DNA of 64,000 nt, from positions 615,722 to 679,721 of the forward strand of contig OZ287703.1 in NCBI GenBank assembly GCA_965649825.1, written 5' to 3'. Numbering within the stretch: position 1 is the stretch's first letter; each line of letters starts with the position of its first letter. Below, in pieces: positions 1,467-57,744 of this stretch. A program made the position numbers and the translations under genes. The notes below the pieces were generated by a model, which ran no database searches, had not been told where the DNA came from, and saw only the letters and a list, made by a program, of their open reading frames with translations. Source of the stretch: Penicillus capitatus. Its lineage: Eukaryota; Plantae; Chlorophyta.

Positions 1467-4400
1467 ATGGAACCTCACCTCGGAATTCGGTTGGTGTCTG
1501 TGTTTTTGGTGGCATTGATTCTATCACCTCACTGCACTGCTGCGATGTGGCACTCGGGAAACGAAGTACGTGGCGTAAGACCGTCACCCGTATCGAAAAC
1601 AACAGGTAGGCCATTCGGCTAAGAGGCCACGCTGCAAATGTTTGCCAACTCCGGCAACCGTGTGCCTGATTCCAGAGGCAAAACGGACACACGTGGTCTT
1701 CCATGGCACAAGCACCGAGTATGACTTCTCGCTCAACCGTCGTCCCGCCACGGTAACTGTGACAGTGAGTGATGCACTCCTTCGACATCAATGCACCAAT
1801 GACGCCTTGCAGAATGCTGAAACGCAACGGGCTTTGTTGCAAGACATCGAAGATGCGGCAGACAGTGACGAGGCCTCCTCAGGTAATCCCTTCCCCTTTT
1901 GCCTCGCATGCTTATTCCGGTATCCATCGCCGTCTTATGCACAGAGTTCGACTGTGCATTGCGCGGAGATCGTCTCTTGAAGCGCATTCGCGTGGGGCAG
2001 AGGGGGTGGCGTGTGAACGATTCGATCATGCTTCGATTGCGGAATGACCTCCAAATGGTCGTTAATTGCACGCGTCCTGGTGACACGATCGCACTCAACA
2101 CAACAAACCCAACTCGACTTGCGTCGCGGGTGATCATCCCCTGGTCCCTAACGTTCGACACAGACATCGACGCGACCGACTTTGATGAAGGCATCCTTCA
2201 GCAGTCCCGGCGGAAAGCCCGCCTTGCCTGTCCTGGCGAAAACGAAGGTCTCTTCCTCGTCCGGTAAGAATCGTCCTCCGGCAGGACGGCTCCTTAAGGG
2301 GAGAGTCTTCAGGGCTCGGAATGTGACCTTTGCTAACATGGTCTTCGAGGGATGTTTTTTCACCCTGGACAGCGAACAGGCTGTCGTTGAGGTGGCATCG
2401 TGCAGATCTGGAAGAATGGACGGTATAGTCCGATGGAACAGCATCGTCATGAGAGACAACCAGTTAGCGACGGGAACAGGACTCCGAGTGCAAACACCGT
2501 CGTGTTTCGCAGTGGAGATGCTCTCTGTTCTGTATCAGAACAACACGTGTTCTGGCCAAGCATGCGGTGCTCTCCTGTCTCTGGAGAACCACATGGAGAA
2601 CTGTACCGTCTCCAGAAACCGCCTAACTCCGGACCAAAGCGCTCACTTCTTTCAGCCGCCTCCCGGATCGCGGACGTACATTGAAGGGCTGGTTGCATCA
2701 GGGAATGAGCCGACTGTACTTCACTTGTCTGATGCATCACTATCTTTGTCGAGATCGACCTTTCAGCAGAACTTTATCCGTTTCGAAGAAGAAGATGACA
2801 AGCAAATGAGTCCCTGTCTTCATCTCGTGAGGAGCTCAGTCACTGTGTCAAACAGCATCTTCCAGAGGAACAGAGGTTCATCAGGAGCTGCTCTTCACAG
2901 CGAAGCGTCCAATATCTCTCTGTCTGAAACCTCGTTTGAAGAGAACACTGCAACCAGAGGCGGCGTCCTGTTTCTGAAGATGGAGAGCGTTGCATCTATT
3001 CACAGCTGTATGTTCGTTTCGAACCATGCCTCTAGAGATGGCGGCGCTCTTTTTGCCTCTGAGTCCAGTGTCTATGCCACCCGGCTCGACTTCCTAAACA
3101 ACTCTGCCGTCGGCAAAGGAGGCAGTTTCCACACAGAAGGCTCCAACATGACAATTCGCCATTGTCGATTTGAGGACGGCTCTGCCGATCAAGGAGGGTT
3201 TCTTGCCATGACAGGATCCTCCTCGAACATCAGTCGATGCGAGTTTGTAGGCGGAGGGTCAGGCGAACTTGGTGGATGCCTCACACTCGAAGGCAACAGC
3301 CGCTCTCAGATCCAACATGCTTTGATGCAGTTTTGTGAGGCCAGACGACACGGAGGCGCCATCTACCTGCAGAGCCACTCCTCGATCGGTGCCGAAAACG
3401 TCACATTCGTCTCCAACACTGCCGTGAGTGAGGGAAACGTCTTCTACGGCAAATCTTCGACAATCGTTATGAAAGACGTCCTGGCAACAAACAACACCGG
3501 AGCGGAGAACGGCGGCGTTGTCTCTTGTTTCAATAACAGCAGACTAGAAATCTCAGACTCTGTCCTTGAGGGAAATGCTGCCAGGTTTGGCGGTGCTCTG
3601 TACATACGATCCCAAAGCCGTGGATATATCAGCCACAGCCTTATGTGGCGAAACCAAGCCTCTGAATCCGGCGGTTCTATCTACATGGAAGAAGGGAGTC
3701 TCTCCTCGAATCGCACGCGGTTTGCAGGTGGAACAGCACTCCATGGTGGTCATCTCCTCGTTATGCTCTCTGAGATTGACATCTTGAATTCTTCTTTTAC
3801 AAACGGCTCTGCAGTACTTGGAGGATGCTTGGGAATCAGTAGAAGCTCTGTGGTCAGTATTCGCAATTCCTCTCTCACTGGGTGCAATTCGCAAGAGAAT
3901 GGGGCCAGCATTTACATGCAAAACAGCACCTTGCGTATCCAGATCAGTAACATCTCTGACAGCACCACACAACTGGGCTACGGAGGAATTTCCTGTGCGA
4001 GTGGAAGTCAATTGGAAGTCACAGACTCGATCTTTTCCCGGAACAAAGCGAACAGCGGCGGGTCCCTGGTGATCCATCACAGCGCCTTTGCCAGAATCGC
4101 CAGTTGCAAATTCCTTTCCAATGAAGCCGAAGGACAAGGAGGAGCAATCTACGTCGAACAAACAAACGCCAGCTTTCACTTGTGCAATTTCTCCAGAAAT
4201 CGTGCTCTTGCCGGTGGATCAATCTTCGCCACGCGAAATGGACACGTGCATCTGACAGACTCTTTCTTGGCCAATGGATTCAGTCAATTTGGAGGCAGCC
4301 TCAATGGCCGTGGAAATGCCTCGTTTTGGCTTCGAAATGTCACGATAACTGGCTGCCGCGCTAACGAAGGAGGCGCGATCGCTCTGGATGCTGCATCTGC

Positions 4401-7400
4401 TGCCACCGTCATCAACTCCACTTTTCTCAGAAACCATGCCAATAGCCGAGGAGGCGCCATTCTCGCTACAACCGCAACTTTAGTCGGTATTCGGATTCTC
4501 TTTTCCGGAAACGAGGCCACCAATGGTGGCGGCGTACACTGTGATCAAAGAAGTCGGGTCGAAATCCGACATTCGGACTTTCAAGATAACAGTGCCGAGA
4601 ACGGAGGTGCCATGCACATCAGCCACTCTGTTACTGGAACATTTGCCAACATATCGTTCTATCAGAATGCAGCTTCATATTCTGGTGGTGTTGCACACGT
4701 TGCTGGATCGACGGTACATTTCACAAATTGCAGGATGAATGGAAATAGAGCAAGCTCGGGAGGTGGCTTCAGCACGTTTGTCGCAAATCTAAACATAAGC
4801 CACTCTTCATTTGTTAATGGCACTGCTAGTGAGAATGGGGGGTTCTTGGCAGCACTGGGTCCTCCTATGGTTGCCCTATACAACGTGACATTGACGAACG
4901 CACGTGCGAAAAATGGAGGCGCGATTTATGTTTTCAGATCGACCATCACAGCAGAGCATGTCAGTTTTTCAGAATGCACAGCCAGCTCGTCTGGCGGCGC
5001 CGTTTTCAGTCCAGCGGAGTCCACCGTTGTTTGCAACGACTGTCTTTTTGTCAACAACTCAGCTGGACTGAGAGGTGGTGCTGTCTCGATGTATTCCCTT
5101 GGTGTTCGACCCATCGTTCTCCAACTCGATCAGAATGTGTTCCGACACAATACAGCCGGATTGGGAGGTGTGGTTATCTGTCAGCCACTGACAACATCTA
5201 TCTGTTCAATCTGCCTGCATCTAGGTGGACTGATTCTCCTGAACGATCCTAATCAGACCAACTGTGCAAATAACTCGACCAACAACTGCTCCCTTGCCGT
5301 GATCACGGGGACGACCTTCCAGCACAATGAAGCTACAGTAGCCGGAGGCGGTCTGATGACTTCAGACATCCGAACCATTCGATTGAGTTGCGCATCTGCC
5401 GAGAGGGAAGACAGAAATCAACTCTACACGAGAGAAGAGCTTTTGGCCTTGAACCTCTTGCAATCACTGGACGATATTTGTGAGACTTGGTCCGGCAACA
5501 TTGCTGGGAGATATGCCCCTGATGCAGGAACCTTTGTCGTTCAAGTCAAGGAGACTATCGTTTTTGATAACGGAACCGAGATCGAGATTGCCAATGGCGA
5601 TTCATACCGTGTGATGGACCATGCTAGCGGAACACCGCTGCCAATTATTCATTTTGAGGCTATGGACGGATTGGGCCAAGGACCTGCAGTCGGATGGGAC
5701 ATCAAAGAGGTCACGACCACAGCATCTTCTCCAGATGGTTTGTTTGATGGACAAATGAACACTCTCCTGGAATCCGATTTTGCAAATCTCACCATCATTC
5801 CATTTGCATTGCCTGGCGAGTACACGGTTCTCATCGAGATCAACGGGATAGATTTGGGGATCTTTGAGATCACAGTGTATGTGCGTGAGTGTTTCATGGG
5901 TGAAGTGCGTTCTGCGAATGGCGCTTTTTGCGAGCCCTGCAGTGCAGCGACCTTCAGTTTCCTTCCAGAGGAGAACTTCGAATGCCATCCGTGTCCAGAC
6001 AATGGGAACTGTGAATCAAAGGTAATATTACCAAAACAAGGATGCTGGCACCAAATCCCATGTTCCGAGCACATCCAGCGATGCCTGACACCCAAAGCAT
6101 GCGAGTCCAAAGATCGAGACCAGAAACTGAGGAAGAAAACGGAAGATGTGAGGATTTGCGACTTCGATGAGCAGTACATCAAGAACTACGCCGAAGCACA
6201 GTGCCGAGAGGTGAGACAGCAGAATGTTTTATCCGGATCTATTCCTCAAGACGTGTCTTGACAGGGACACCAGGGGCCTCTGTGCGGATCTTGCAAGGAA
6301 TCTTACGGGAGGTCGCATTCCTTTCTCTGCGAAGAGTGCTTCTCTGATATGGGCAATGTCGTCCTGGTCTGTCTGTCTTTTCTCGTCCTGCTGGTTCTAT
6401 CAGCCATCGCCATCCGCAGCAATTTGATTTCGTCCACCTCCTTATCACAGCAGCCTCAGGATTCAACAACACCAGCAGCTTCATCCAACAGTCATTCAGC
6501 TCCGTCCAGCAGGGCTGGTACAGGGATGAGATTATCGCAACATGTTCCAGATGAAGAAATTGGATCTGATAACAGTCAGAACGCAAATCCTGCTCAGAGT
6601 CACGATGCCGAGCTTGCAAAGTGGAAGGCAGTCGAGTTGTTCAAAGTGCAGATTGTCCGTATCCTTCTTCCGTCCTAACCATTCTGAGTGTTCTGCAGAT
6701 TGCAGTGAACTTTGTGCAGGTCACGGCCATAGCTGTCGCTGTCGATGCGCAGTGGACATTCGCTTTAGTGGCGCTCTTCCAGACTGCAGGTAAAGAGTAA
6801 TTCTGTCAGTCCTTAAAAAAGAGTCTCCTTCTTGCAGAGTTTGTTAGTGCAGTCACATCTGAGGCAGTGAATCGATCTGTCGACTGTCTCATCCCGTTAG
6901 GCGCCTCCATGCAGCGCTCCATCGCCAGTACACTGGTGGATATATTGCAGCCACTTGCATGCATTCTTGTCTTCGTCGTTTTCTGGCTAGCGGTCAAAAT
7001 CGGACGGAGCAAGCCATGGGTGTACTTGCTGAAGAAATGTATTCTCAGTGCCCTTGTCGTCCTCTACATCAGCTATATCTCCATCACCAAAACACTCGTC
7101 AACATCCTCAACTGCGTCAAAGTCCATGATTCGACGACAGTTGGAATCGATGAGACAACAGACTACTGGATACTGGATACCGCTGTCATCTGCAACGAAG
7201 GATCTCATGCGATTCTAGCAGGACTTCTGGCTTGGCCATTCCTCGTCATCTTCACGTTCGGATTCCCTCCGGCGATCGCTTACCTCATCATCGTTAAGGT
7301 CGCAGAAGACTACAAGGATGGCTGGATCTATGACATTGCTGGTTTCGTCTATCGATCCTACAGTAAGAAGTACATCTTCTGGGAATCTGTGATCATGTTT

Positions 7401-16501: not shown

Positions 16502-19500
16502 TTAGAACATAGACATCCCGGGAATGCTTCGAATTTTGGCCTGGGCCTCTCGTCTCGTCCTGGCGACCTCTTCCGCAAAAAGCTCCGCATTATCCTGCGT
16601 CTCAAACTGCTTTGTCTGAACGAGGAAATCTCTTAAGTGGTGTTTGAAGGTTTGAAACTCACGAATGTCAAACATTCCAGTAATGCACACCTGCACAAAG
16701 GCGTGTCATGGAATAGGAGGAGGAGAGGCAGAATATCGAACGTGAATTTGCTGAGGCATCATGTTGGGAAACGACTCCTGCAGGAAACCGTAGACGAACT
16801 CGGCCACATAGGCAGCATTGCTTGGATAGGCATTGACTCCTTTGGCTTGGGTGTCCCAAATTGGCGCGGACAGCGTCGTGTGGTCTTGGATGGACATGAA
16901 TAACAGGTGCAGGATTTTGCACTGATGTTTGAATCCGGGTTTGTGAAACGTATCTGCACACGACCATGGTGGTGGAGACATGTGCACCTACCTGGCCGAG
17001 AATGGGTTTACCTGTCATGACCGTGAAGATCTCTCTCATGATTTTGATGTAGTACTCTTGATAGAATTGCAGAAGCATGGAGGAACGGGTAAAGTGAGAG
17101 ATCAAGTCTTCCAGAAGGAGCAATCCTGTCTCCGCTACGTTCCGCATCGTATGCCGAAATGCCCATACGACTGAATCCATCACCAGTGTCAGCTGCTCCT
17201 TCGTCATCGCAAAGAGCATGGGATGACAGTACTTGGCAATGGACTGCAGCAGCGAAAAGAACTTGACACGATGTTCTGGGTAGTCTTCGAAATTCTGTGT
17301 GATCATATTGAGCGTGCATTCGAAGACGGCCTCAAAGACACGGGGGACTTCGGCTTCGATCATCATGCCAAATTTTTGAATGACGGTCGAGAAGAGGCTG
17401 AGAACCTCGGCGTCGCGTGCGTCAGGGACATTGCGTTGATAGTCTCCCAGGATGGGATCCATCATTTGCGGCACCAGTTCCTTGACTGCCTCATTCGGGA
17501 AAGCCAGTCCACCGACAAACGTCTCCAGCAATTGCAGCACAGCACGTTTGACAGAACGCATGGCTTTCACTGGACTGGTCCGTGCGGCATTCACTTCGCC
17601 AGACTGTACAGCGGTGGACACCAGTTCACTGTATTGCTTGTAGATGAGGAGGAAAGGCATAAAGAAGAGTCGCATCTGAGGCATAAAATCCATACCCAGG
17701 CTCTTGCAGACAGCGGTATTCGCCTGAAGACAATGGTGAATACGTCGTACGGTGTCCACGCCGGTGAGCGATGCCGTATTGGACGAGGCAGCGTTGACGA
17801 TCGAATGACAGATGGCGTTTGGCGGGGCCATGAGCATTTCTAAAAAGTTTTCTTTCTCAGCTTGCGAGTGCTCTGCGCTGATCATCAATCCCACAGACTC
17901 GTAGAAAGAGCTGACCTGAGTAGGGGACAGATCCTGAATGATATCTTCCAGCCTGTGCAGCAACTCAACAATGAATTTTTGCGTCTCATCGTTCTGCCGT
18001 ATCACAAACTGCGCTTTGCATTTGGTGCAGATCTTGAGAAACGTATCACAGGCCATGTCCTGAACACCGGGATGCATTTCGTGCATAAACTCGAAGAGCT
18101 TATTCACAACGGTCTTCAAAAACTTCCAGTGAGCCCTCAGAAAACGCGGATACTGACCCACGACCCACATGATATTCGAAGCGATGATGGCTTTGTTGTC
18201 TTTGCCCTTGGTACGTTCGCAAAGACTCAGCAAATCGCGAATGACGCCCACCAAAAACCGGCTCTCCTGTTCTTCGTCCATTGTCCCGCTGATGGATCCC
18301 ATCGCCCAACAAAGCGTATTCAATGGTCCCCACGAGAACCGCACCATCGTCTGCGATGCGTCCATCTCTGTGCGCAGCTTCGTGCACATCTGGTTTTCGG
18401 TGTCTGCCTGATCGAGGTTGCTCAAGTAAACGAGCGTTTCACGCATCGTCTTGTATTGCTGCAACGTATCGCTGTCCTTTAACGTCTCGCGAACGGCGTT
18501 TCCGTTCTCGTCTTCCACGATGATCACTTCCTCTGGCTTGGCCATTCGGACGATCATGATGCCTCGAACTTGGGAAAGGATATCCTTGAACACCTGGTTC
18601 TTGCTGACGCCTCCTTGATGATGATTGTGTTCGATATCGTGATTGAACACATCCACCACAAAGTAATTCCAAAACTCCAAGCATGTCTTGAAGACCTCCA
18701 TGTCATCGTGGTGCGAGATATGCACCAGATACTGCAGTCCTCCAACGAGATACTCCAGGTTTGCGCTGTCTGCCTCGAAAAGCGTGTAATGTGTTCTGAG
18801 AAAGGTGGCAAAGAACTCTGCGAGGTTGAGGATGAATTCCTGGAGGTCATCGGATTCTTGATCGAGAAACTGATGAAGCGGATGCTTGAAACTCCAGAGT
18901 CTTTGCAGACGTTCGAGGAAGACGCGATAGAAGGTCACAAACTGTTCTGTGAAATCTTCCACCTGCAATCCGCCGATCTGCATAACATCGCACTCTTCCC
19001 ACACATCTTTGATGCCAAACAGTATCAGACACACCTCAGTTAGGCACTTTAGCGCGACGTTACGGAAAGGCTCCTGGGGAAAGAGGTTGAGCAGACAGTC
19101 GACCAGATTCCCTTGAAAAATGAAGGCGATCGGTACCCAAGAGAGAAACACATGCAGCGTCTCCAAAGTGGCCTACAGATTTGAGTGAGAATGAGGATGA
19201 GCAAAAGAGTGAGATGACGTGGATAAGACGTGGATTGGTGGAATTGTTCAGCACGAAGGAACAGAGCTGTTGGATGGATGCAAATTCATCCTTGAGCGAC
19301 GTCTTGAGTTCCCGTGTCTTTGCACCCGTCAGATTTCCCCGTGAGAAATCAAAGACCTATCATCTCACATTCTCACCCTTTCTCTCACACACTCTCAATC
19401 CACCTCTTCTGAGAGCAACTTGAAAATTTCCATGGAGTTCTCACACAGCGTCTCTGAACTCTTTGAAGCTTCAACCATTTCGGACACGAATGTCGTCCAT

Positions 19501-27947: not shown

Positions 27948-30900
27948 TCAAACGCCTTCCAGTTTGTCCTCGATATCGGTATAGAGAGCCTGAAGTTTCT
28001 GGACTTGCTCATCGCTCGCTTTCCAGAATCCTCTGCCCGTCGCTTCCAACATCCGTCGGATCACGTTACGAAACGCCTGATGATATGTCACACATGTCGG
28101 TCACACATACTCTGCCTGGAATGCGCACGCACTTGAGGATTGGCCTGTCTCAGTGTCTTTGCCATTTCTGGATCGAAAGCGTAGGTGGATGCCGCTTCGT
28201 CCCAAGACCAATCCTCTGCAAAGTCTGTCGTGGCACCCCAGCCAACCATGGCTGTCATTCTCTGGGAGATTTCAAAGGCGCCGCCCGATCCCTGCTCGGC
28301 CATCGCTTTCGCCCAGCGTGGATTCAGCAGCTTCGTTCGGTATTCCATGCGCAGGACTTGGTCGAGCTGCTGAGGACGTACCTCTTTGGAAAACGTTTCC
28401 ACCACGCTGCAGTCCACCGTCTCCTCTCCACGGACATTCCTTATGGCTCGAACGAGCGCTCCTGTATTGGCATAGTATTCCTGCAGCAGTCCATACATCT
28501 GTGTTCAGAGAAGGCAGTCGTGGACGAGTCATGTGCCTGGATGTCGGTGAGGCCGTACTCGACGGAATCGATCTCCTGGATGACGTGACTGGTGGACTTC
28601 AGCAAGGATTGGAGCACTTCTGGCCGAGCTGTTCCTTTCTCGCCCCTTCCGTAAGAAAATGAGTTTCGTGATGCCCACGTCGTTCCCAGTTCCTGGTTGT
28701 TTATCCAATCGGACGCACCCACCCGTTCGTTAACCATGGAACCGAAATCTCCGGCAGGGTTGGAGAATAGACGTGCCGATGTGCCATCCGCCAGACCGTC
28801 ATCTCCCATCTCCAAAGCATGTTTGCGGACAAAATTCATTTCCGGCGGCTCGTCTGCCTCCGACGCTCTCTTGAATAAATCATCCAACAATTCCACCACG
28901 TTCTGAAAAGAGTCTCGGAAGATGCCACTCATATGACACAAGCAATCGATGCGTGGTCGTCCGTTGAGCTGTTCCAGTGGCAACAGCTCAAACCGAGCAA
29001 TCCTGCCGGTGCCTTCCTGAATGGGCGTGGCACCGACCAATGACAGCACGATCGCAACGGATTCGCCTTTTGTCTTGATACTGTCCAGTCCCCACAGATT
29101 CACAGCGATGGTTTCGGGAAGAGTACCGTTCCGCTGAATGTGTTGTTCGATGATGGCCTCGGCGACCTTTTGGCCGCGATCGATGGCAGTGGGTCCAGGC
29201 ATGCGATAGGGATCGAGCGCAAAGATGTTTCGGCCTGTTGGCAGCACGCCAGCCCCATCTCGTAGCAAGTCTCCCCCTGGAGCGGGCTGCACGTATTCTC
29301 CGTTTAATGCGCGGACAATGCTCTCCATCTCTTCGGTATTCTGTTGCAAGAGATTCTTGATCTCGATGGCATGCAGAATGCGTTGCCGTTGAGTGTCGTC
29401 TGTTGCCATCCGCTCAGCCGTCGTTCCGTTGGAAGACACACGGGCGATGACATCCTCTGGCAGATCGGCTCCGAAATAGGCCTCCAGATAACGAGCAATG
29501 GCGTCTGAGTCTGGTCTCTTTCCCAATACATGCAGACCTTCAGAATAGAGACGGTTCTCCAGTACCTGCACACAAAAGAGTAAGAAAAGGTGTGAGATAA
29601 ATATAGGGTGGACCATTAAGTACTGGTAGAGATCCGCAATGTAGTCTCTGAACATCTCGGACGTCAGTTGATGCACATTCTCGACCGTCAATTTGAACGC
29701 AGCGTTGTTTTTGAAGTCTGGATGGCGGAATGGACAATCCTCGTTCAGTCCTGAGCTTTCCAACAGATTCACAATCGATTCTCTCAACGTATGGCCGTCC
29801 GCCGCCTCTCTGTCGTCTCGCACTTCATCGACCAGGCTTTTCAGCTCGGCGAGTTGACGATAAAGACCAGCTCTGCCGTATGGGGGTACGTTATGCGAGA
29901 CGATGGTTCCATATCCTCGGCGCTTGGCGATGAGCGACTCGGATGGATTGTTGCACGCATAGACATAAACATTCGGCATATTTCCCAGCAGGACATCTGA
30001 CCAGGAAAAGCCTGTGTTGCCCAATGGCGCACCCGGGAGCCATTCGACCGTTCCATGCATTCCAAAATGCAGCACGACATCGGCGGCAAAATCATCCTGA
30101 AGCCACTTGTAGAACGCACAGTACTGGGGGTGTGGTGTGAGATCGCGTTCAAAGAGTAATCTCATAGGGTCGCCTTCCACCCCCAAAAGAGGCTGAACGC
30201 CGATCCACACGTTTCCAAACTGAAGACCGCTCACCAAGAGATTGCCACCGGCCGAAGTGGACAGGCCTCTAAAGCCAAAGCAGCTGTCACATCGTTGACT
30301 CATGAGAGAGCCCACCTGTAACGGTTGACATCGCCCCACTGTTTTTCGAGTTTCTGGACGAGGACGTCGTTGTCGGGAAGAAAAGGAATCGGTCCCCATT
30401 CGGACGGCCCCCATGTCTCAGGATAGGTCAGTCCTGCCTTGAGCTCCTCCGGCGTCACTTCCTTAGCCGCAATGGCGACGCCAGTAGCCGCAGCCGGACC
30501 AACTCCGACGTCCTCGACGCCTTTCTCTCCTCCAAAGATGACGCGCTGCTCCTGCTGCATCTTTAATGCATCGATCAGAGCTTCTCCATCCACGTTATCC
30601 GATAGATCACCCACATCGTATCCCTAAACGCCACGATCTCGTGTTAGGTGCGTTAAAACAGAGATAGATGACTTCTTGTTTGAGGCGGAGAAGGAGAGAT
30701 TTCAATGACTGTGGGACATTCAGTAAAGCTGCTGTGCCAACGGCGCCAACGCCTGGTGGGAATCCATACAGCAATACAGCCAGCTTTCTTTCGTGGACGG
30801 GTTTCTTTCGGAGCCCTGTCCACTTTCTGACCCGAGCCGTGAGCTTCTTCACGCGTTCAGGGATGAGAAAGATGTTGTCTCCGACCAGTCCACCCAATGG

Positions 30901-32731
30901 CACGGTATCGACAGATCCATCAAGTTCTGGAAGGGAATAGAGGACGACAGATTGGAGTCCAGCGACGCCATCTGCCATCCAGGATTCGAGATTCTGCACC
31001 AGTAGAGGCGCTGCCACAATGTATGGAATATTCTTGGCTGTCAGGATCGCCTGGGCAATATCTGCCTGTCTCCCTGCCTCCATGCTGCCGGCCGGTCCAC
31101 CAACCAACGGAAATCCAATGGTATTGACCACAGCATCGACAGGAATAGCATCCCCACGCAATGTATCACGTTTCTGGCTGCCAGATGCAATTCTCTGCTG
31201 TTCCGTCTGAGACGTCAGCACATCGCGGACAACCGTATGCGCCTCGATTCCTGTAATAAAAATCGGCAGCGGTTTTAGGCCGTCATCTTCAAAGAGGCGA
31301 ATCAGATCATTTATGTAATGTTGGTTAGTGATGACGTGCTTTCTGTAGAGCAGAATAGCAACGGTGGGAGCATCTTCCTGCACACGTCCATGCATCTGGT
31401 ACCATGTCAAGTACTCCTGTGGTGTGGCAAACACGCCATCATGATCGGGATGAACACATCCGGTGTTGGGCGTTTCCACAGGGGCCGCACAGCCAACAGT
31501 CGTTGTTCCACGTAAACGCCCGACCATGTACTGCGCCATATTTTCAATGTTCTCCGATCCTCCCTGTGTCCAGTAGTTGTACACCATGAGCCAAGTTTGC
31601 AGATCATAAGCCCTCTCCCCTGTCGACATTCGGCAATGAGATATTTGAGAAGAGTGTCTAGATGGCATGCCTGGTATGAACTTCAGTATTTTCGGGCCGA
31701 TCTTGAGAAACGATAGGTATCCCAGCATCCTGTCCTCTTCCTTTTTGGATCCGAACAGCGAGAGGAGTTTCTTCACAGCAGGCGGAGCTCCCTGCGATTT
31801 GCCTTTCGGTTCCATCGTGAACGTGCCGATCTTGTTCAAGGACATCAATTCGAGAGCAGATTCGAAAACAAATCGCGTCGGAATATGACGGGCGCGTTCC
31901 CGCAGCCATAACGCCTCCTCGTAGTCCACAATCAGACTGGCAAAGAAGACAGAGGCAGATTTCAGAGCCGCTTCCAAAGCATCTGGCCGTTCGTGGATAT
32001 CCCGATCATTGAACACCGACATACGCACATCTGGCATCTTTGCCGCGATCTGTCGAGATGCATTTCCATAGAGATCCGTATTGAACGACTCGAATCCCGT
32101 GATCAGAACGATGTGAATGTGTCCTTCCTGCTGAAGAGGAACGGTCGATGAGACATCGTTCATTTCGTCTCTTCTCTCTCGCCATGTGACAGCGTCTTTG
32201 GCATCTTGTAACTGCCGTTGGCAGAGATTCTGTTTCATTTTGAGCTGTTGAATGGTGGCCTGCAGGTGATACCATGCATCGGGCTCCTCCTGCATCACCT
32301 GATCCAGCAATGCCTTCATCACGGCTGGCTCTTCTCTGCCAATATCGGCGAAACGCGTGGCAGTAACGTCGCCCAAATGAAAGACCTCGTCTGAATCCCC
32401 CACGGTCACTGTCTTGTTCGAAAACAGCTTTCTATAGGCGTCATCCATCATCGACTCCACTTCCAACAACTGCAAGTCCACACACTATATCGTGCTTGTT
32501 CATGGAGACGAAGATGTTTGCTTTGGTCTGGAGCTTGTCGACCGTATCGCTCGCATAGGTTTCGGTAAACTCCTCGACGAACAGTTCATCGCGCGTCTTC
32601 TGTTTGCCATCAATGGCGTTGCATCTTCGGATCCGAGTATTCGGCGTCACGCGTCGCCTTCTGTCGCGACAATGTCCCGACCGTGCTGGCAAAGCGACAC
32701 GGAGCACTGGCACAACGCTCGGAGACAGCAT
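27948..32731 (-). CDS. CHLH2: Magnesium chelatase H subunit, CHLH2 type (CobN/ChlH superfamily), plastid transit peptide
   Basis: Arg/Ser-rich N-terminus; IVLITGFESFNTDLY, NTIGFPLVGGPAG, FGNVWIGVQPLLGVEGDPMRLL, HFGMHGTVEWLPG, LPTGRNIFALDP, LWGLDSIKTKGE, LLNPRWAKAM, AFRNVIRRMLEATGRGFW. Confidence 0.93.
31620..31670 (-). other. GC-AG intron in CHLH2
   Basis: CCA G|gcatgc...cgacag|GG GAG joins KFIP to GERAYDLQTW; 51 nt, the typical intron size here. Confidence 0.7.
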
Positions 32732-32843
32732 GTTGCAAAGGGCGTTACTCAGAATTGCGTGAGCATATGGTCGGATGACGTCTCGTCATGTGAAGTCTCG
32801 TCCAACGGCGAATGGTCTCCGCCACAATCGGCGTCCTTCTTGA

Positions 32844-33135
32844 ATGGTAATGACCCCCGTGCCTCCGAGCGCCGCAATAAAGGGCGTCACTGTTCTTAGC
32901 GACGTCCCTTCGAAGGAGTTTATTTTAAGTCTGGACCGAAAACAGCCGAGTCGGTGAGATCTGGCATCGCTGGTGACAGACATATGCATGTGTCTTGAGG
33001 TTTAGGCAGAAACTTGTGTTAAGGGACTTGGACACGACACACCTCTTTGTGCATCCAGACGCCGTCGAGTATATTCTCACGGAGCTGCGGCAGTTTCAGG
33101 AGCTCAATACGTACGAGGCACCAACACTGTCTTGA
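32844..33135 (+). CDS. TFB5: TFIIH p8 subunit TFB5 (REX1-S); absent from the ORF track because it is intron-split
   Basis: Intron 32954-33005; protein MVMTPVPPSAAIKGVTVLSDVPSKEFILSLDRKQPSRQKLVLRDLDTTHLFVHPDAVEYILTELRQFQELNTYEAPTLS* matches the TFB5/GTF2H5 pattern (KG...D...K.FIL.L...LD.TH.FV). Confidence 0.9.
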
Positions 33136-33138
33136 AAA

Positions 33139-33721
33139 ATGGATTCGGTGTCGACATTGACGTCTCTGCTCGGGAAGTTTCTCAAGAGACAGGAGGATCG
33201 TGCACGTGAGTATCAGCACCTGCACGAGAGATTCCGAAAAATGCTGGAGACGAAGGAAGAGGGGCCTTTCGTCGAGTGCATCTCCGAACAGACGCAACGA
33301 TTCGCACAGATCTCAAAAGATATCATCGACATCGAACAGCAGTTACATCAAGTGGGTACACAGTGAGTATCAAAAGAGTGAGAAATGTGTGAGATGGGTG
33401 TAGCTTGGCGTGGAGAGTGGTGTGACCTGTGCGAAATGGATTCGTGTCGTGCAGCTTGGGGAACAGTCCAAACTCCGAGCAACATCACAGCTACAGGCAC
33501 TACGAAAGAACTACGAGTTCGAGGAGTTTGCCTGGCAGCAGAGACCAGTGGATGATGCCTGTGATCAGTCCTCTGCAGACATCATCTCGGATGCAGGATT
33601 CAGAGAAGAGATGAAAAGGAAGACATTGGCATTGGATGCCGCCATCCATCAGATCAATGACGCATTGGACGAGATTCGATGCGTCAAAACCGATATCGAG
33701 ACGCAGCACCAGGCAAATTGA
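33139..33721 (+). CDS. REX1B: REX1-B domain protein
   Basis: FLKRQEDRAREYQHLHERF...EQTQRFAQISKDIIDIE...IRVVQLGEQSKLRATSQLQAL...INDALDEIR resembles REX1-B/C19orf60; one intron; position directly after TFB5 matches the REX1 locus. Confidence 0.82.
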
Positions 33722-34065
33722 GCAAAGCCACACAGAAGACACGCTTTCTTTGTTGCGAAACGGGAGATGCAGCTTTCTTGTGCCATTGGTGGGTGAAGAC
33801 ATCGAGGCATCGCGATAGGAGTGACCGTCGTCTTTCGATCGTGGACACAAATGGATGCATTTAACACGCGGTCTTCTCTAGGCCAACAGAAAATCTCTTT
33901 CTCTAGTCGACACGACAGAAATCTTCCGGATACTCGACAGACCCGACTGACCAACCAATCATGCGGCCCTCCATAAGAAAATGTGTATCATCCTTGTGAT
34001 CCAGTCAGGCGCGCATGAGAAAAGAGTGACCGATGAGTGAGAGCATTCATTGATGTTGTTTGTCT

Positions 34066-36522
34066 CTACGTTGTCGGTTCATCAGCAACGAGAGATTTTA
34101 ACCACATCTCGGCGTAGATGCCGCCCTTGGCCAGGAGCTTGGTATGACTGCCAGATTCTACGATGCGTCCATTTTCCAAGACAACAATTTTATCACACTG
34201 TGAGGCAGTAGATAATCGGTGAGCAACGAAGATCGACGTGCGGCCCACTGCCAGGTTCCGTACAGCTTCCAAGATGTCTTGTTCTGTCGTCGCATCCAAT
34301 GCAGATGTGGCTTCATCAAACAACAGCACCTGAGGTGCCTGCAAGAAAACCCGAGCGATGGCCACACGTTGCTTCTCGCCGCCGCTCAGTTTCAGACCAC
34401 GTTCACCCACAATCGTATCATAACCGTCCGGCATTTTGAGGATGGAATCATGTATTTTGGCGGCTTTGGCCGCCGCATAGACCTCGTCAGCCGAGGCACC
34501 CAATCGACCGTATCTACAGAGACAATCAGATGAAGGGCAATAGACATGTGGCTTGAACAGACTCGATGTTGTAGAAGATGCTCTCGTTGAAGAGGACCAT
34601 GTCCTGTGGCACCTGCCCCAGTGCCGATCGCAGGCCGCGGAATCGGAGATCGCGCACGTCATAGCCGCCGATTCGGACAGCTCCCTCATCCACGTCATAG
34701 AATCGGTAGAGCAACCGCAGGAGTGTGGATTTGCCACTGCCACTGGATCCCACGATGGCACAACTGCTGCCGGCAGGGATCGTGAAACTCAGATTCTGCA
34801 TGATATAATGTGTGAGAAAGAGTGAGAGTATGCTCTGTCCAGAAGCCTTACTTTAAAGATGGGCGCTTTGTCGTTATAGCTGAACTGCACGTTCTCGAAG
34901 GCCAGATCGTATCCACGCTCCTGAGACGGCAAATTGAAGGCGTTTGCCTTTTCTGTCACCTTGGATCGTTCTTTAAGCAACTGAAACATTTCTCCCATAT
35001 CGACCAAAGCCTGCTTCGTCTCGCGATACACCGTTCCCATGAAATTGAGCGGCGACGCTAACTACAAGATATCGGGAAAGATAATGTGCGTTGAGAGATG
35101 CGGCGGCGGCGGTTATACTTGAAAGAGCAATCCGTTAACCATCACAACATCTCCCACCGACAGACGGCCTTCGATGACGCCATGTGTCGTCATCATCATA
35201 GCGATGGCCATTGTTGTGGACAAGATCAAGTTCTGTCCAAAATTGAGAAACGCCAGGCTGTAGAGCGTCTGCAGAGCAGATTTCTCATACTCAGCATAGC
35301 ACGCATCGTGTCGTTTTCTCTCATGTGCTTCTGCCTGAAAGTACTTGACCGTTTCGTAGTTGATCAGAGAATCGACCGTCAGCGCCATTGCCTTCTGATC
35401 GGCGGCATTCATGTCCTTTCTGCAAACATAAGACTTATCAAAAATCATTTCTCCGATGATATCTACCGAAAGCGCATGCGCTGTTGTGTGACATAGAAGG
35501 TAAACAATGTGTAACTGGTAATGCTTGCGAGAGTGAGAACGCCGAAAGAGGGTCCACATTTGGTGGACAGGATTCCCGTCACGAGGGCCACTTCGAATGC
35601 CGTGGGGAAGACATTGAAGAGCATCGCCCCGAGGATAAACGCAATTCCCCGTAGACCACGGTCCATCATACGGCTCACCGCTCCCGTTTGCCGTTCCAAA
35701 TGAAACCTGCATCACACTCTCACTCTTTGCCTCCATCAGGCACTCTATATTCCAGCGACAGACTTGAGATCCTGAGCATGGAGATGGACGAAGACCTCAT
35801 CGGCTATTGTCCGAATGGCTCTCTGTGATACGTGCGAGAACACAGCGACGCGTAGTTCAGAACAGAGCGAGGCAGCACTGCGTATGGCCCCGTAGCCTGC
35901 CATCATCATCATAGGCGTCACCATGACGAGATTGGCCACATTGAGGGACCCCGTTGGATCAATCGTCAGTGCATCGATGGCATACTTAAAGACAAAAGGA
36001 ACCTGTTCACGTCTATCATCTCATTGCCAAAAGAGTGAGGGGCCATGGTTGGACCTGAATGTTTAGTATCTTGCCAGAGATGAGCAGGAAGAGGGAAGCG
36101 ATGACACGTCTTTTCAGTTCTGGATGATCCTTGGGCCAGAGATACGATCCCAGCTTTCGCAGAACGGCATCCGTCGACATCTGCTGTCGATCTGCATCAT
36201 CCTGTGTGCCCATCTGTCCATTCCTGCCCTTCTCATCTGCGCTCATTCTCTGATCCTTTTTCGAAATTTCTGCCGCCGTTGTTGTATGCCATCTCTCCCA
36301 ATGTCTCATCCACGCTTCGTGGCCACAATCCCATCGACGGAGTGGCCGGATCGCGCGACCCGGCTGTTGCTCGGGTGTTTTCGATTTCTCTTCCGTTCCA
36401 TGAGATCGGACGATCGACACCGTCGTCTCCGACGCCTGTTTGAAGAGGCCGGTCGTGTCTGGACGGCGACGGGGATCGAGTGCCGCGAGGATCACCCGAG
36501 TACAGCGCCGGCTGCGTCGCAT
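34066..36522 (-). CDS. ABCB7: Mitochondrial ABC half-transporter (ATM1/ABCB7 family)
   Basis: [43 protein letters not shown], Walker [10 protein letters not shown], signature LSGGEKQR, Walker [12 protein letters not shown]. Confidence 0.95.
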
Positions 36523-56217: not shown

Positions 56218-57744
56218 TCATGTGGCAGGAACTGCCAGTGAGCCATCACCATCTTTCATGCTGCTGCTGCCGTTGCTGCCTCCAAACAAAGACGCCGTTT
56301 CTGGAAGGGAATCGTCCTCTTCTGCAGACTTGTTTTTTCGACTGAGGTGCACATCGAATCGAGTGAGAAACGGAGCTTCGTGAGCATCCGTTTGAATTCT
56401 GAAGATTCCTTTTGCGTCGTCTCTTTGAAAGTAATGATCAATTAGATCATCGTAGAGCACATCCAGATCTGTCGCGCTGTCAGGGGATCTCGATTGGACG
56501 GAAGAGTGTTGCTGCACGTGTCGTTTCGGGTGTTGCTTGAAACTGATCACCACGCCAAACAACGAATGAAAGAGTGACTGCCACTGCTGCTGTCTTTTAT
56601 CCTCAGGGCACGTCAAAAACTGCGAGATCTGTATCAGATGCCGCTCCAGTGTCAGACAAGCCATCTGCAGTGCAGGCGCTGTCACAGGCTTGGCACAGTT
56701 GGCAGTCAGATCAAAAGGATCACGCACAAACACACCACTCTTCCTGCCACCTTTTGCTGGAACATGCTGCACAATCCCCTTGCGACAACACACAGCGATC
56801 CGGGGTGCCTGGCCATCGTACAATGCCTCCCTACTGCAGTACAGGGAGAGAAATGTAAAGCACGACAATGCCAGTTCCAGTAAAGATGCTTCTTCGTTCT
56901 TCTCCTTCTTCTCTTCCTTTAGTCGATCTCTCACTTTTGAGCAGTACTTGTCCACATCAGAGTCGTGCGCCCCATCGAGAATGGTATCGAGCGACGGTAG
57001 CAGACCCTGTTGACGACAGACGGTCAAAACGATGATGGTGAGAGGGTAGGATCCAAAAGATCCTTTCGAAGCGTCGTTCAGTTCATGCACTTTCGACCAT
57101 TTCTTCATCAACAGCACCAGATTCCTCACCATCGGCCGTTGACGGATCACTTCGCCCAAAACGCGACTCCTCAAAATGCCAGCCTCGTTACCCACACTGA
57201 AATCGCATTGAAACCCATACATCCGATCCGTACACCTGAGGATGGGAATCTTCGCTCGGCTCAGCACAAAGGCAGGCGACGTCAGACGCAATCGATTTCG
57301 GAACTGAAGGAACTTGAGGATATCGTAAAGCAAACAGGAACGCAGTTCCTTTTTCTTGATCTTATTGAGCGCCATTTTCTTGCTGTTATGGTGATTTTGA
57401 TAGTGGCCACTGACTGAGATATCCACATCGCCATGTCGCAGACTCGTGCCCATCACCGTTGATCCGTAGGGCGTCAGAGTGAGATCGGACACACGTTGCA
57501 GATACATCAACGGTTTGGTTGCTGGATGTTTTGAAGTGTTCAGGAGTTCCTTCTGCAAGGCGAACACGAAGTTTTCTCTGGCGGCATGATTCTCTGGTGT
57601 CTCGCCCAGAGTGCCGGTCAGTCTGATCAGGGTCTTCGAGTAAAGACGCAGCTCCTTTGGATCAAACGACTGGAGCCGTGCTTTGACGATTTGGACGGCG
57701 CGCTGGAGGAGTTTTTGTAAAAAATGGGCTTCGACGATCGTCAT
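56218..57744 (-). CDS. Cid1/TUTase-like non-canonical nucleotidyltransferase (intronless)
   Basis: YGSTVMGTSLRHGDVDISV (GS...DxD), AKIPILR, CDFSVGN, LMKKWSKVHELNDASKGSFGSY, VRDPFDLTANCA. Confidence 0.9.
   Translation of the reverse strand: MTIVEAHFLQKLLQRAVQIVKARLQSFDPKELRLYSKTLIRLTGTLGETPENHAARENFVFALQKELLNTSKHPATKPLMYLQRVSDLTLTPYGSTVMGTSLRHGDVDISVSGHYQNHHNSKKMALNKIKKKELRSCLLYDILKFLQFRNRLRLTSPAFVLSRAKIPILRCTDRMYGFQCDFSVGNEAGILRSRVLGEVIRQRPMVRNLVLLMKKWSKVHELNDASKGSFGSYPLTIIVLTVCRQQGLLPSLDTILDGAHDSDVDKYCSKVRDRLKEEKKEKNEEASLLELALSCFTFLSLYCSREALYDGQAPRIAVCCRKGIVQHVPAKGGRKSGVFVRDPFDLTANCAKPVTAPALQMACLTLERHLIQISQFLTCPEDKRQQQWQSLFHSLFGVVISFKQHPKRHVQQHSSVQSRSPDSATDLDVLYDDLIDHYFQRDDAKGIFRIQTDAHEAPFLTRFDVHLSRKNKSAEEDDSLPETASLFGGSNGSSSMKDGDGSLAVPAT

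Follow-up and report, generated by a model that had tools for sequence, protein, structure and literature searches.

The locus at 32812-33721 of the window (the whole 64,000 nt stretch of Penicillus capitatus DNA that was analysed) encodes TFB5 (REX1-S) followed directly by REX1-B. Judged by its sequence, it is an orthologue, in a Bryopsidales-like ulvophyte, of green-algal REX1 (REX1S = TFB5, then REX1B). The domains, collinearity, stop and start codons and chlorophyte host, which are the features that can be tested from the DNA, all place it in the known green-algal REX1S-REX1B bicistron family. In Penicillus capitatus the two ORFs would most likely be co-transcribed, with leaky scanning the most likely route to REX1-B. 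The best-studied green-algal nuclear bicistron is thus extended to siphonous ulvophyte seaweeds and their relatives. The new observations are modest, being the extension to Ulvophyceae, the range of spacers and a conserved pyrimidine at -3 of the TFB5 start, and the understanding of the REX1 system is unchanged by them. The features of the locus are as follows.

ORFs up to 32731 (putative ATG), minus strand: ChlH/CobN-like gene, the divergent neighbour
32732..32811, plus strand: interval of 80 nt between the putative ChlH/CobN-like ATG and the TFB5 ATG
32812-33721, plus strand: the TFB5 and REX1-B gene pair, two small DNA-repair genes in head-to-tail order
32812..32846, plus strand: TFB5 exon 1, encoding MVSATIGVLLE and the first 2 nt (TG) of a Cys codon, start cggcgaATGG
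32847..32899, plus strand: TFB5 intron 1, 53 nt, GTAATG...CTTAG, phase 2 within the Cys codon
32900..32953, plus strand: TFB5 exon 2, encoding (C)DVPSKEFILSLDRKQPS(R)
32954..33005, plus strand: TFB5 intron 2, 52 nt, GTGAGA...TTTAG
33006..33135, plus strand: TFB5 exon 3, with the stop TGA at 33133-35
33136..33138, plus strand: inter-ORF spacer AAA, 3 nt (GAA in the near-identical contig L003, AAA in L001/L002)
33139..33351, plus strand: REX1-B exon 1, start tgaaaaATGG
33352..33403, plus strand: REX1-B intron in the best model, 52 nt, GTGGGT...GTGTAG
33404..33721, plus strand: REX1-B exon 2, with the stop TGA at 33719-21
Ending at 34066, minus strand: ABC transporter on the other flank

The TFB5 coding sequence given here (32812-32846 + 32900-32953 + 33006-33135, product 72 aa) corrects the preliminary description, in which the gene began at ATG 32844 with MVMTPVPPSAAIKGV... 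and encoded 79 aa. That 5' end is wrong, as it misses exon 1 and reads through intron 1; exon-wise or longest-ORF calling was here misleading as to the start codon. Comparison with relatives places the start at ATG 32812, where the protein begins MVSATIGVLLEC, and exon 1 is supported by homology to Caulerpa L004 and to L005, L007, L013, L014 and L016. The L004 contig (Logan SRR2835676) has a TFB5 ORF that opens MVATTIGVLIEC, with a 49-nt intron within the Cys codon and then DIPSKEF.... The position of intron 1 is common to Caulerpa, Bryopsis and L016; intron 2 is missing from Caulerpa L004, in which the coding sequence is contiguous. The corrected 72 aa cover positions 1-66 of 67 of Pfam PF06331 with 78.4 bits, compared with 63.8 bits for the earlier model, and align Met1-to-Met1 with human GTF2H5 (MV..GVLIECD). 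The alignment with yeast Tfb5 PDB chains likewise runs from residue 1. Identity is 78% (56/72) to the Caulerpa-run contig and 51% (37/72) to Bryopsis.

The 79-aa product from 32844 is rejected on three grounds: L001/L002 lack 2 nt that its frame requires, its Pfam score is lower and homologues have an upstream exon. The 2-nt indel of L001/L002 lies within intron 1, so the exons are intact and the broken frame of the longer model is explained. There is therefore no need to suppose that L001/L002 have a pseudogene, a +1 frameshift or an assembly error. The ATG at 32844-46 consists of the final 3 nt of exon 1 and, once spliced, is not read in the TFB5 frame (GAA-TG|C), and ATG 32850, the claimed second Met, is inside intron 1 as part of the GTAATG splice donor.

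REX1-B is 176 aa (33139-33351 + 33404-33721) and matches positions 2-94 of 94 of Pfam PF14966 (DNA_repr_REX1B) with 72 bits. Its homologues include Chromochloris Cz12g12030 and proteins of Volvox and Bryopsis, and it is 44% identical to Caulerpa protein P0003. The 52-nt intron retains the conserved CAKWIRVVQLGE segment, its donor GT is kept in L001/L002, the resulting length fits the intronless Caulerpa protein and a 2-nt indel relative to L003 is inside it. An intron at 33363-33417 (55 nt) would be an alternative with an equal Pfam score. A 103-nt intron (33352-33454) was rejected, since it loses the conserved CAKWIRVVQ segment and its Pfam match stops at position 70 of 94.

Between the window and L001/L002, dN/dS is 0.05-0.07 for TFB5 and 0.14 for REX1-B, with a dS of 0.47-0.60. 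Both ORFs are apparently functional, separately terminated coding sequences. As purifying selection acts on both, both proteins are presumably made, which concerns their production and not the route by which it occurs.

The junction reads as it was originally described, with TGA at 33133-35, AAA at 33136-38 and the REX1-B ATG at 33139-41 in a single frame. Both ORFs are on the plus strand and each has its own stop and its own start, giving TGA-AAA-ATG at 33133-33141. The pair was correctly named, with PF06331 upstream and PF14966 downstream in the arrangement of the Chlamydomonas REX1 bicistron, and a gap of 3 bases indeed leaves no room for a promoter or terminator between the ORFs. On the other side of TFB5, a bidirectional promoter shared with the ChlH/CobN-like gene and a short TFB5 5' leader would both have to be placed in the 80 nt of 32732..32811, an interval with three ATGs, at -44, -36 and -23 when counted from the TFB5 start. 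No TGTAA, the poly(A) signal of chlorophytes, occurs on the plus strand of 32701-34100, which is uninformative. The neighbouring ChlH-like ORF has a weak match to cyanobacterial ChlH (E = 6e-39).

The host was placed using an exportin-1 ORF of 832 aa (16668-19166, minus strand), for which the named best matches are all Viridiplantae. Identity is 66% to a Logan protein that shares its run with L004 and clusters at 90% or more with Caulerpa lentillifera g3212.t1, followed by 58% to Bryopsis sp. KO-2023, 56% to Ostreobium quekettii, 55% to Coccomyxa and ~51% to land plants. This single marker protein places the host in the Chlorophyta. Together with TFB5 and REX1-B, it indicates that the host is most likely a core chlorophyte, either bryopsidalean or a closely allied ulvophyte. 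The bicistron had been presented as conserved in a distant lineage, which is not upheld: the exportin's best named relatives are Caulerpa, Bryopsis, Ostreobium and Coccomyxa, which puts the host inside the range of taxa with a reported bicistron (PMC7896298, PMC11291117). A non-green distant lineage is rejected by the exportin search; the weak ChlH match had hinted at something unusual.

Relatives of the locus come from a full HMMER scan with REX1-B, which found 49 homologues; flanking DNA was retrieved for part of them. A word-indexed search with REX1-B gave 2 matches and a 48-sequence profile gave 11. In each retrieved green-algal locus of sufficient length, REX1-B is directly preceded by TFB5 on its own strand. 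The same adjacency is found in at least 8 further sequence groups, with spacers of -1, 1, 3, 11, 13, 30/380, 42 and 173 nt.

Window and L003: spacer of 3 nt (AAA and GAA), same species, ~99% identical
L001/L002 (ENA ERZ26696514): spacer of 3 nt, a ~89% identical relative
L005/L006: spacer of 11 nt
L007: spacer of 1 nt (TAA-A-ATG)
L004 and L010: spacer of 13 nt, Caulerpa-run contigs
L011-L013: spacer of 42 nt, three ~1 kb contigs from three sequencing runs
Bryopsis L014 (GCA_030272585.1): spacer of 380 nt in the genome, predicted to be 30 nt when spliced
L016/L017: TGATG overlap (-1 nt), a compact GC-45% chlorophyte
L008: spacer of 173 nt, a GC-75% alga

The adjacency of TFB5 and REX1-B is far beyond chance; both the window's own clade and these further groups show it. 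The two genes stay together across deep chlorophyte divergences, with a spacer that ranges from an overlap to at least 173 nt. The 3-nt junction had been singled out as extremely tight; it is not special in this respect: relatives have -1, 1, 11 and 13 nt between the ORFs, and Auxenochlorella has 14 bp (PMC11291117). In L009 (TARA, GC 64%) REX1-B has an N-terminal extension, and no TFB5 is found in the 106 nt present upstream of it, which is uninformative.

Two of these groups bear on the transcript. Each of the contigs L011-L013 contains both ORFs and is intron-free, in contrast to the genomic locus of the related Bryopsis, where introns interrupt both genes. This suggests that the three contigs are probably cDNA, that is, assembled transcripts, and as such they would be probable direct evidence for a bicistronic mRNA in a Bryopsis-like relative. 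The 380-nt gap of Bryopsis itself contains a predicted intron (L014 about 2626-2970), opened by GTGAGT 4 nt beyond the stop and closed by TATGCAG, 26 nt short of the REX1-B ATG. All 8 ATGs of the gap are inside this predicted intron, and the predicted spliced leader of 252 nt has none.

REX1 of Chlamydomonas reinhardtii is described as a single transcript for REX1-S (TFB5) and REX1-B (Cenkci et al. 2003, as cited in PMC7896298), and the bicistron is conserved in four chlorophytes: Chlamydomonas, Volvox, Chromochloris and Coccomyxa (PMC7896298). The window locus shares with Chlamydomonas REX1 the two families, their order and strand, a stop and start for each ORF, a small first ORF and a chlorophyte host. 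It differs in its spacer, which is 3 nt compared with a median of ~183-260 nt in Chlamydomonas bicistrons. Its host is ulvophyte/Bryopsidales-like, a class not sampled there, and its introns are tiny (52-53 nt). No report of nuclear polycistrons in Ulvophyceae was found in the literature search.

Bicistrons of green algae have a weak Kozak-like context at ORF1, short 5' UTRs and a depletion of ATGs before ORF2, the median observed/expected ratios being 0.43-0.49; mutagenesis in living Auxenochlorella speaks for leaky scanning and contradicts both reinitiation and IRES (PMC11291117). The REX1S-REX1B pair of Auxenochlorella protothecoides (UTEX250_A11.30960/30955) has a 14-bp inter-ORF region, which was used in a working reporter, and overlapping stop and start codons occur at other loci of that alga (PMC11291117). 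The window contains the orthologous pair, likewise with a very short inter-ORF region, but its 3-nt spacer is in frame and one out-of-frame AUG is left in ORF1. Outside the algae, Drosophila has a bicistronic Tfb5 (Dmp8)-Dmp18 transcript (PMC9514664), and TFB5 has been given as a conserved uORF of CG31917 (PMC2276209). TFB5 is there also the small first cistron of a nuclear bicistronic mRNA; however, the second cistron is a Znhit1 homologue and not REX1-B, an independent origin in animals.

It is probable, although well short of certain, that the two ORFs of the window are co-transcribed on one mRNA and that REX1-B is reached via leaky scanning. A single capped, polyadenylated mRNA with both ORFs would be transcribed from the short bidirectional promoter region that also serves the ChlH-like gene. 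The 72-aa TFIIH subunit would come from ribosomes that start at the TFB5 AUG, which is sub-optimal with its pyrimidine at -3. The 43S complexes that pass this AUG would meet only one more, which is weak and out of frame, before beginning translation at the REX1-B AUG, which has A at -3 and G at +4 and stands 3 nt past the TFB5 stop. The window fits leaky scanning because the ORF1 start is sub-optimal, the leader is ATG-poor, at most ~80 nt separate TFB5 from the ATG of the divergent neighbour and the RNA has no excess structure.

The claim of a sub-optimal first start holds in that the true TFB5 start has no purine at -3. [quoted passage not shown] With G at +4, which is favourable, the TFB5 start is only moderately weak. 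The REX1-B ATG is strong in the window, as described, with A at -3 and G at +4. Weak and strong contexts are here judged by the bases at -3 and +4. Across the lineages in which the TFB5 start is visible, the window included, a pyrimidine stands at -3 in 7 of 7 (C, T, T, T, T, C and C), with G at +4 in all, so that the Kozak-like context of ORF1 is sub-optimal at -3 while G at +4 is present everywhere. This conserved pyrimidine is comparative support for leaky scanning that is independent of the model species. At the REX1-B start the base at -3 varies across lineages (A/G, C, A, C, G, C, C). The strong context is therefore not conserved, being replaced by C at -3 in Caulerpa, L005, Bryopsis and L016, and this counts against leaky scanning.

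Depletion of ATGs had also been claimed, on the basis of an ORF with none after its first two Met codons. The region between the two starts is ATG-poor, but those two codons are not start sites and one internal ATG stays. It is the single one in 222 nt, at CDS position 33 (32844-46), in a weak context of T at -3 and C at +4. The ORF starting there has 86 codons and overruns the REX1-B ATG by 71 nt; the 187 nt that separate this internal ATG from REX1-B contain no other. From base composition 3.4 ATGs are expected and 1 is observed, a ratio of 0.30 (Poisson P(<=1) = 0.15); synonymous codon resampling with the window's own codon usage gives 2.3 expected (P = 0.22). The depletion in the window sequence alone is suggestive and not significant (P = 0.15-0.22). 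The ratio of 0.30 would suit leaky scanning when set beside the published medians of 0.43-0.49 for algal bicistrons (PMC11291117). Across seven lineages the internal ATGs upstream of REX1-B number 1, 1, 1, 1, 4, 0 and 1. The 4 of L013 count against leaky scanning, as does the overrunning ORF from the position-33 AUG, since it would draw off part of the scanning ribosomes. Termination-reinitiation, too, would favour spacers that are very short or overlap.

Termination-reinitiation is the main rival, although an unlikely one. The bicistron would be the same, with REX1-B made mainly by 40S subunits that re-acquire initiator tRNA after the TFB5 UGA and restart 3 nt on. The stop-start distances of -1, 1, 3, 11 and 13 nt across several lineages are what this predicts, with stop and restart overlapping or a few nt apart in the window (3 nt) and in five relatives (-1 to 13 nt). 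Neither the position-33 AUG, which is out of frame, nor the 4 internal AUGs of L013 would matter, and the weak REX1-B context of several relatives is accommodated. Reinitiation is, however, normally efficient only after very short uORFs, and TFB5 has 72 codons. The arrangement is kept with spacers of 42 nt and 173 nt in relatives, and the conserved -3 pyrimidine at the TFB5 AUG is given no role. In calicivirus termination-reinitiation, AUGA/UAAUG stop-start overlaps depend on a TURBS. The junction in the window resembles these in having stop and start a few nt apart, and in L016 they overlap as TGATG, but it belongs to a cellular nuclear gene and lacks UGGGA, and relatives tolerate spacers of 42-173 nt. 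No TURBS-like UGGGA is present in TFB5 exon 3, and the mature RNA of the TFB5 junction folds no better than shuffles (z = -0.41); ORF1 is neither very short nor accompanied by a TURBS-type 18S-binding element or excess structure. Reinitiation is also contradicted by the in vivo tests in Auxenochlorella (PMC11291117).

A variant confined to the bryopsidalean clade is somewhat more doubtful still. It supposes that the REX1 bicistron has there shifted to obligatory stop-start coupling, with ribosomes that reinitiate efficiently behind a 72-codon ORF at spacers of -1 to 13 nt and without a viral-type TURBS. If true, this would be a cellular, nuclear case of termination-reinitiation after a long ORF, and the TFB5:REX1-B ratio would be set through the coupling rather than through leaky scanning.

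Separate overlapping transcription units, in which REX1-B would start in TFB5 exon 3 or an intron and both mRNAs would be monocistronic, are improbable. The genome is compact and its bidirectional promoters are only tens of bases long, which would be in keeping with such starts. Against this, adjacency, order and strand are conserved where the REX1-B proteins are only ~45% identical, the probable cDNA contigs cover both ORFs and the predicted intron of Bryopsis spans the inter-ORF gap. The REX1-B leader from TFB5 exon 3 would necessarily be very short, and Iso-Seq in other chlorophytes finds exclusively bicistronic REX1 mRNA (PMC7896298).

The preliminary description had also raised readthrough of the UGA. 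A functional TFB5-K-REX1B fusion, for which the in-frame 3-nt spacer had been selected, is very improbable. In the window, L003 and L001/L002 the ORFs share a frame and are a single sense codon apart; with longer spacers the frame is shared in L013 and possibly Bryopsis. It is absent from four groups: L005 (11 nt), L007 (1 nt), Caulerpa (13 nt) and L016 (-1 nt). Since the shared frame is not conserved, readthrough into a fusion is unlikely to be of importance. UGA is followed by A in the window and by G in L003, and not by the readthrough-prone C, so that neither a conserved frame nor a leaky stop context is found. REX1-B keeps its own conserved Met start, and chance alone puts about a third of algal bicistrons in frame (PMC7896298). 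Least credible of all is an IRES within the TFB5 coding region that recruits ribosomes straight to the REX1-B AUG, which has no specific support. Against it, the TFB5-junction RNA is no better folded than its shuffles, exon 3 is conserved in a synonymous-substitution pattern (18 synonymous and 4-5 non-synonymous changes) and IRES models have been tested and rejected for algal bicistrons (PMC7896298, PMC11291117).

Fusions of the two proteins do occur in annotation. Micractinium tetrahymenae KAL4434050.1 and Haematococcus lacustris KAJ9513508.1 are annotated as TFB5::REX1B fusions. These are products of gene prediction, and the fused models imply that the two genes are adjacent there too. Exon-wise or longest-ORF gene calling misses TFB5 or, as in these two algae, fuses it with REX1-B.

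The junction between TFB5 and REX1-B takes other forms in relatives of the window. Two loci of a compact chlorophyte with a GC content of 45% (L016, L017; ENA ERZ25074155 and Logan SRR28170465) have the sequence TGATG at position 2999-3003, in which the TFB5 stop codon overlaps the REX1-B start codon; intron 1 of TFB5 in this alga lies at a Cys codon position identical to that of the window. In Bryopsis sp. KO-2023 (BSYQ01000006.1; locus L014, 2622-3000) there is a gap of 380 nt from the TFB5 stop to the REX1-B start, which from its sequence looks like an intron within the inter-ORF spacer. The putative intron would begin with GTGAGT, 4 nt past the TFB5 stop, and end with TATGCAG, 26 nt before the REX1-B ATG, and all eight of the ATGs in the gap are inside it.

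Public gene models exist in which the N-terminal part of TFB5 is joined to REX1-B, namely those of Micractinium tetrahymenae (P0036, KAL4434050.1) and, likewise, Haematococcus lacustris (P0048, KAJ9513508.1). These fusions look like annotation artefacts of a bicistronic locus.

The introns of TFB5 and REX1-B (window 32847-33403, and relatives L001, L005, and L007) are all tiny and uniform across the clade, at 43–53 nt. Between near-identical strains, indels are confined to the introns of both genes, as in the 2 nt indel near 33399-33400 that separates the window from the same-species locus L003.

Upstream of TFB5 are a divergent gene and, between the two, a short motif:

28441-32731, minus strand: CobN/ChlH-like gene with a DUF3479 N-terminal domain, head-to-head with TFB5
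32766-32772: palindromic TGACGTC motif, inside the 80 nt bidirectional promoter region

The 80 nt are those between the TFB5 ATG and the putative ATG (32731) of the CobN/ChlH-like gene. The motif is also kept in the 89% identical L001 and L002, and may be a promoter element common to both divergent genes. The CobN/ChlH-like gene is far more diverged than canonical algal ChlH; cyanobacterial ChlH is only a weak match to it (E = 6e-39, ~430 aa).

Synteny between the window and the Caulerpa contig L004 is limited to the TFB5-REX1-B pair itself. In L004, a gene for an MTPAP-like poly(A) polymerase (1643-4603, minus strand) is head-to-head with TFB5. The MTPAP-like gene of the window (56218-57744, minus strand) is 23 kb away and TFB5 adjoins the ChlH-like gene instead.

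L001 and L002 are collinear, slightly differing copies of the whole 20 kb region from one metagenome (ERZ26696514). Their contigs measure 1.15 Mb and 0.66 Mb and are covered to about the same depth, at 159x and 173x; the pair probably represents either two haplotypes or two strains of one alga.

Elsewhere, the window contains an ORF that is unusual in a green algal nuclear genome:

2182-6261, plus strand: intron-free ORF of 1359 aa, with Chlam_PMP repeats (Chlamydia polymorphic membrane protein repeat) throughout (Pfam E = 8e-24)

Among all matches to the exportin-1 ORF of the window, used as a host marker, the third-ranked (978 bits) is P0057, filed under the jellyfish Rhopilema esculentum (EukProt EP00795, gene2799-1022_t). 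The high rank of a jellyfish entry suggests that the Rhopilema data set is contaminated with algal sequence or includes a symbiont.
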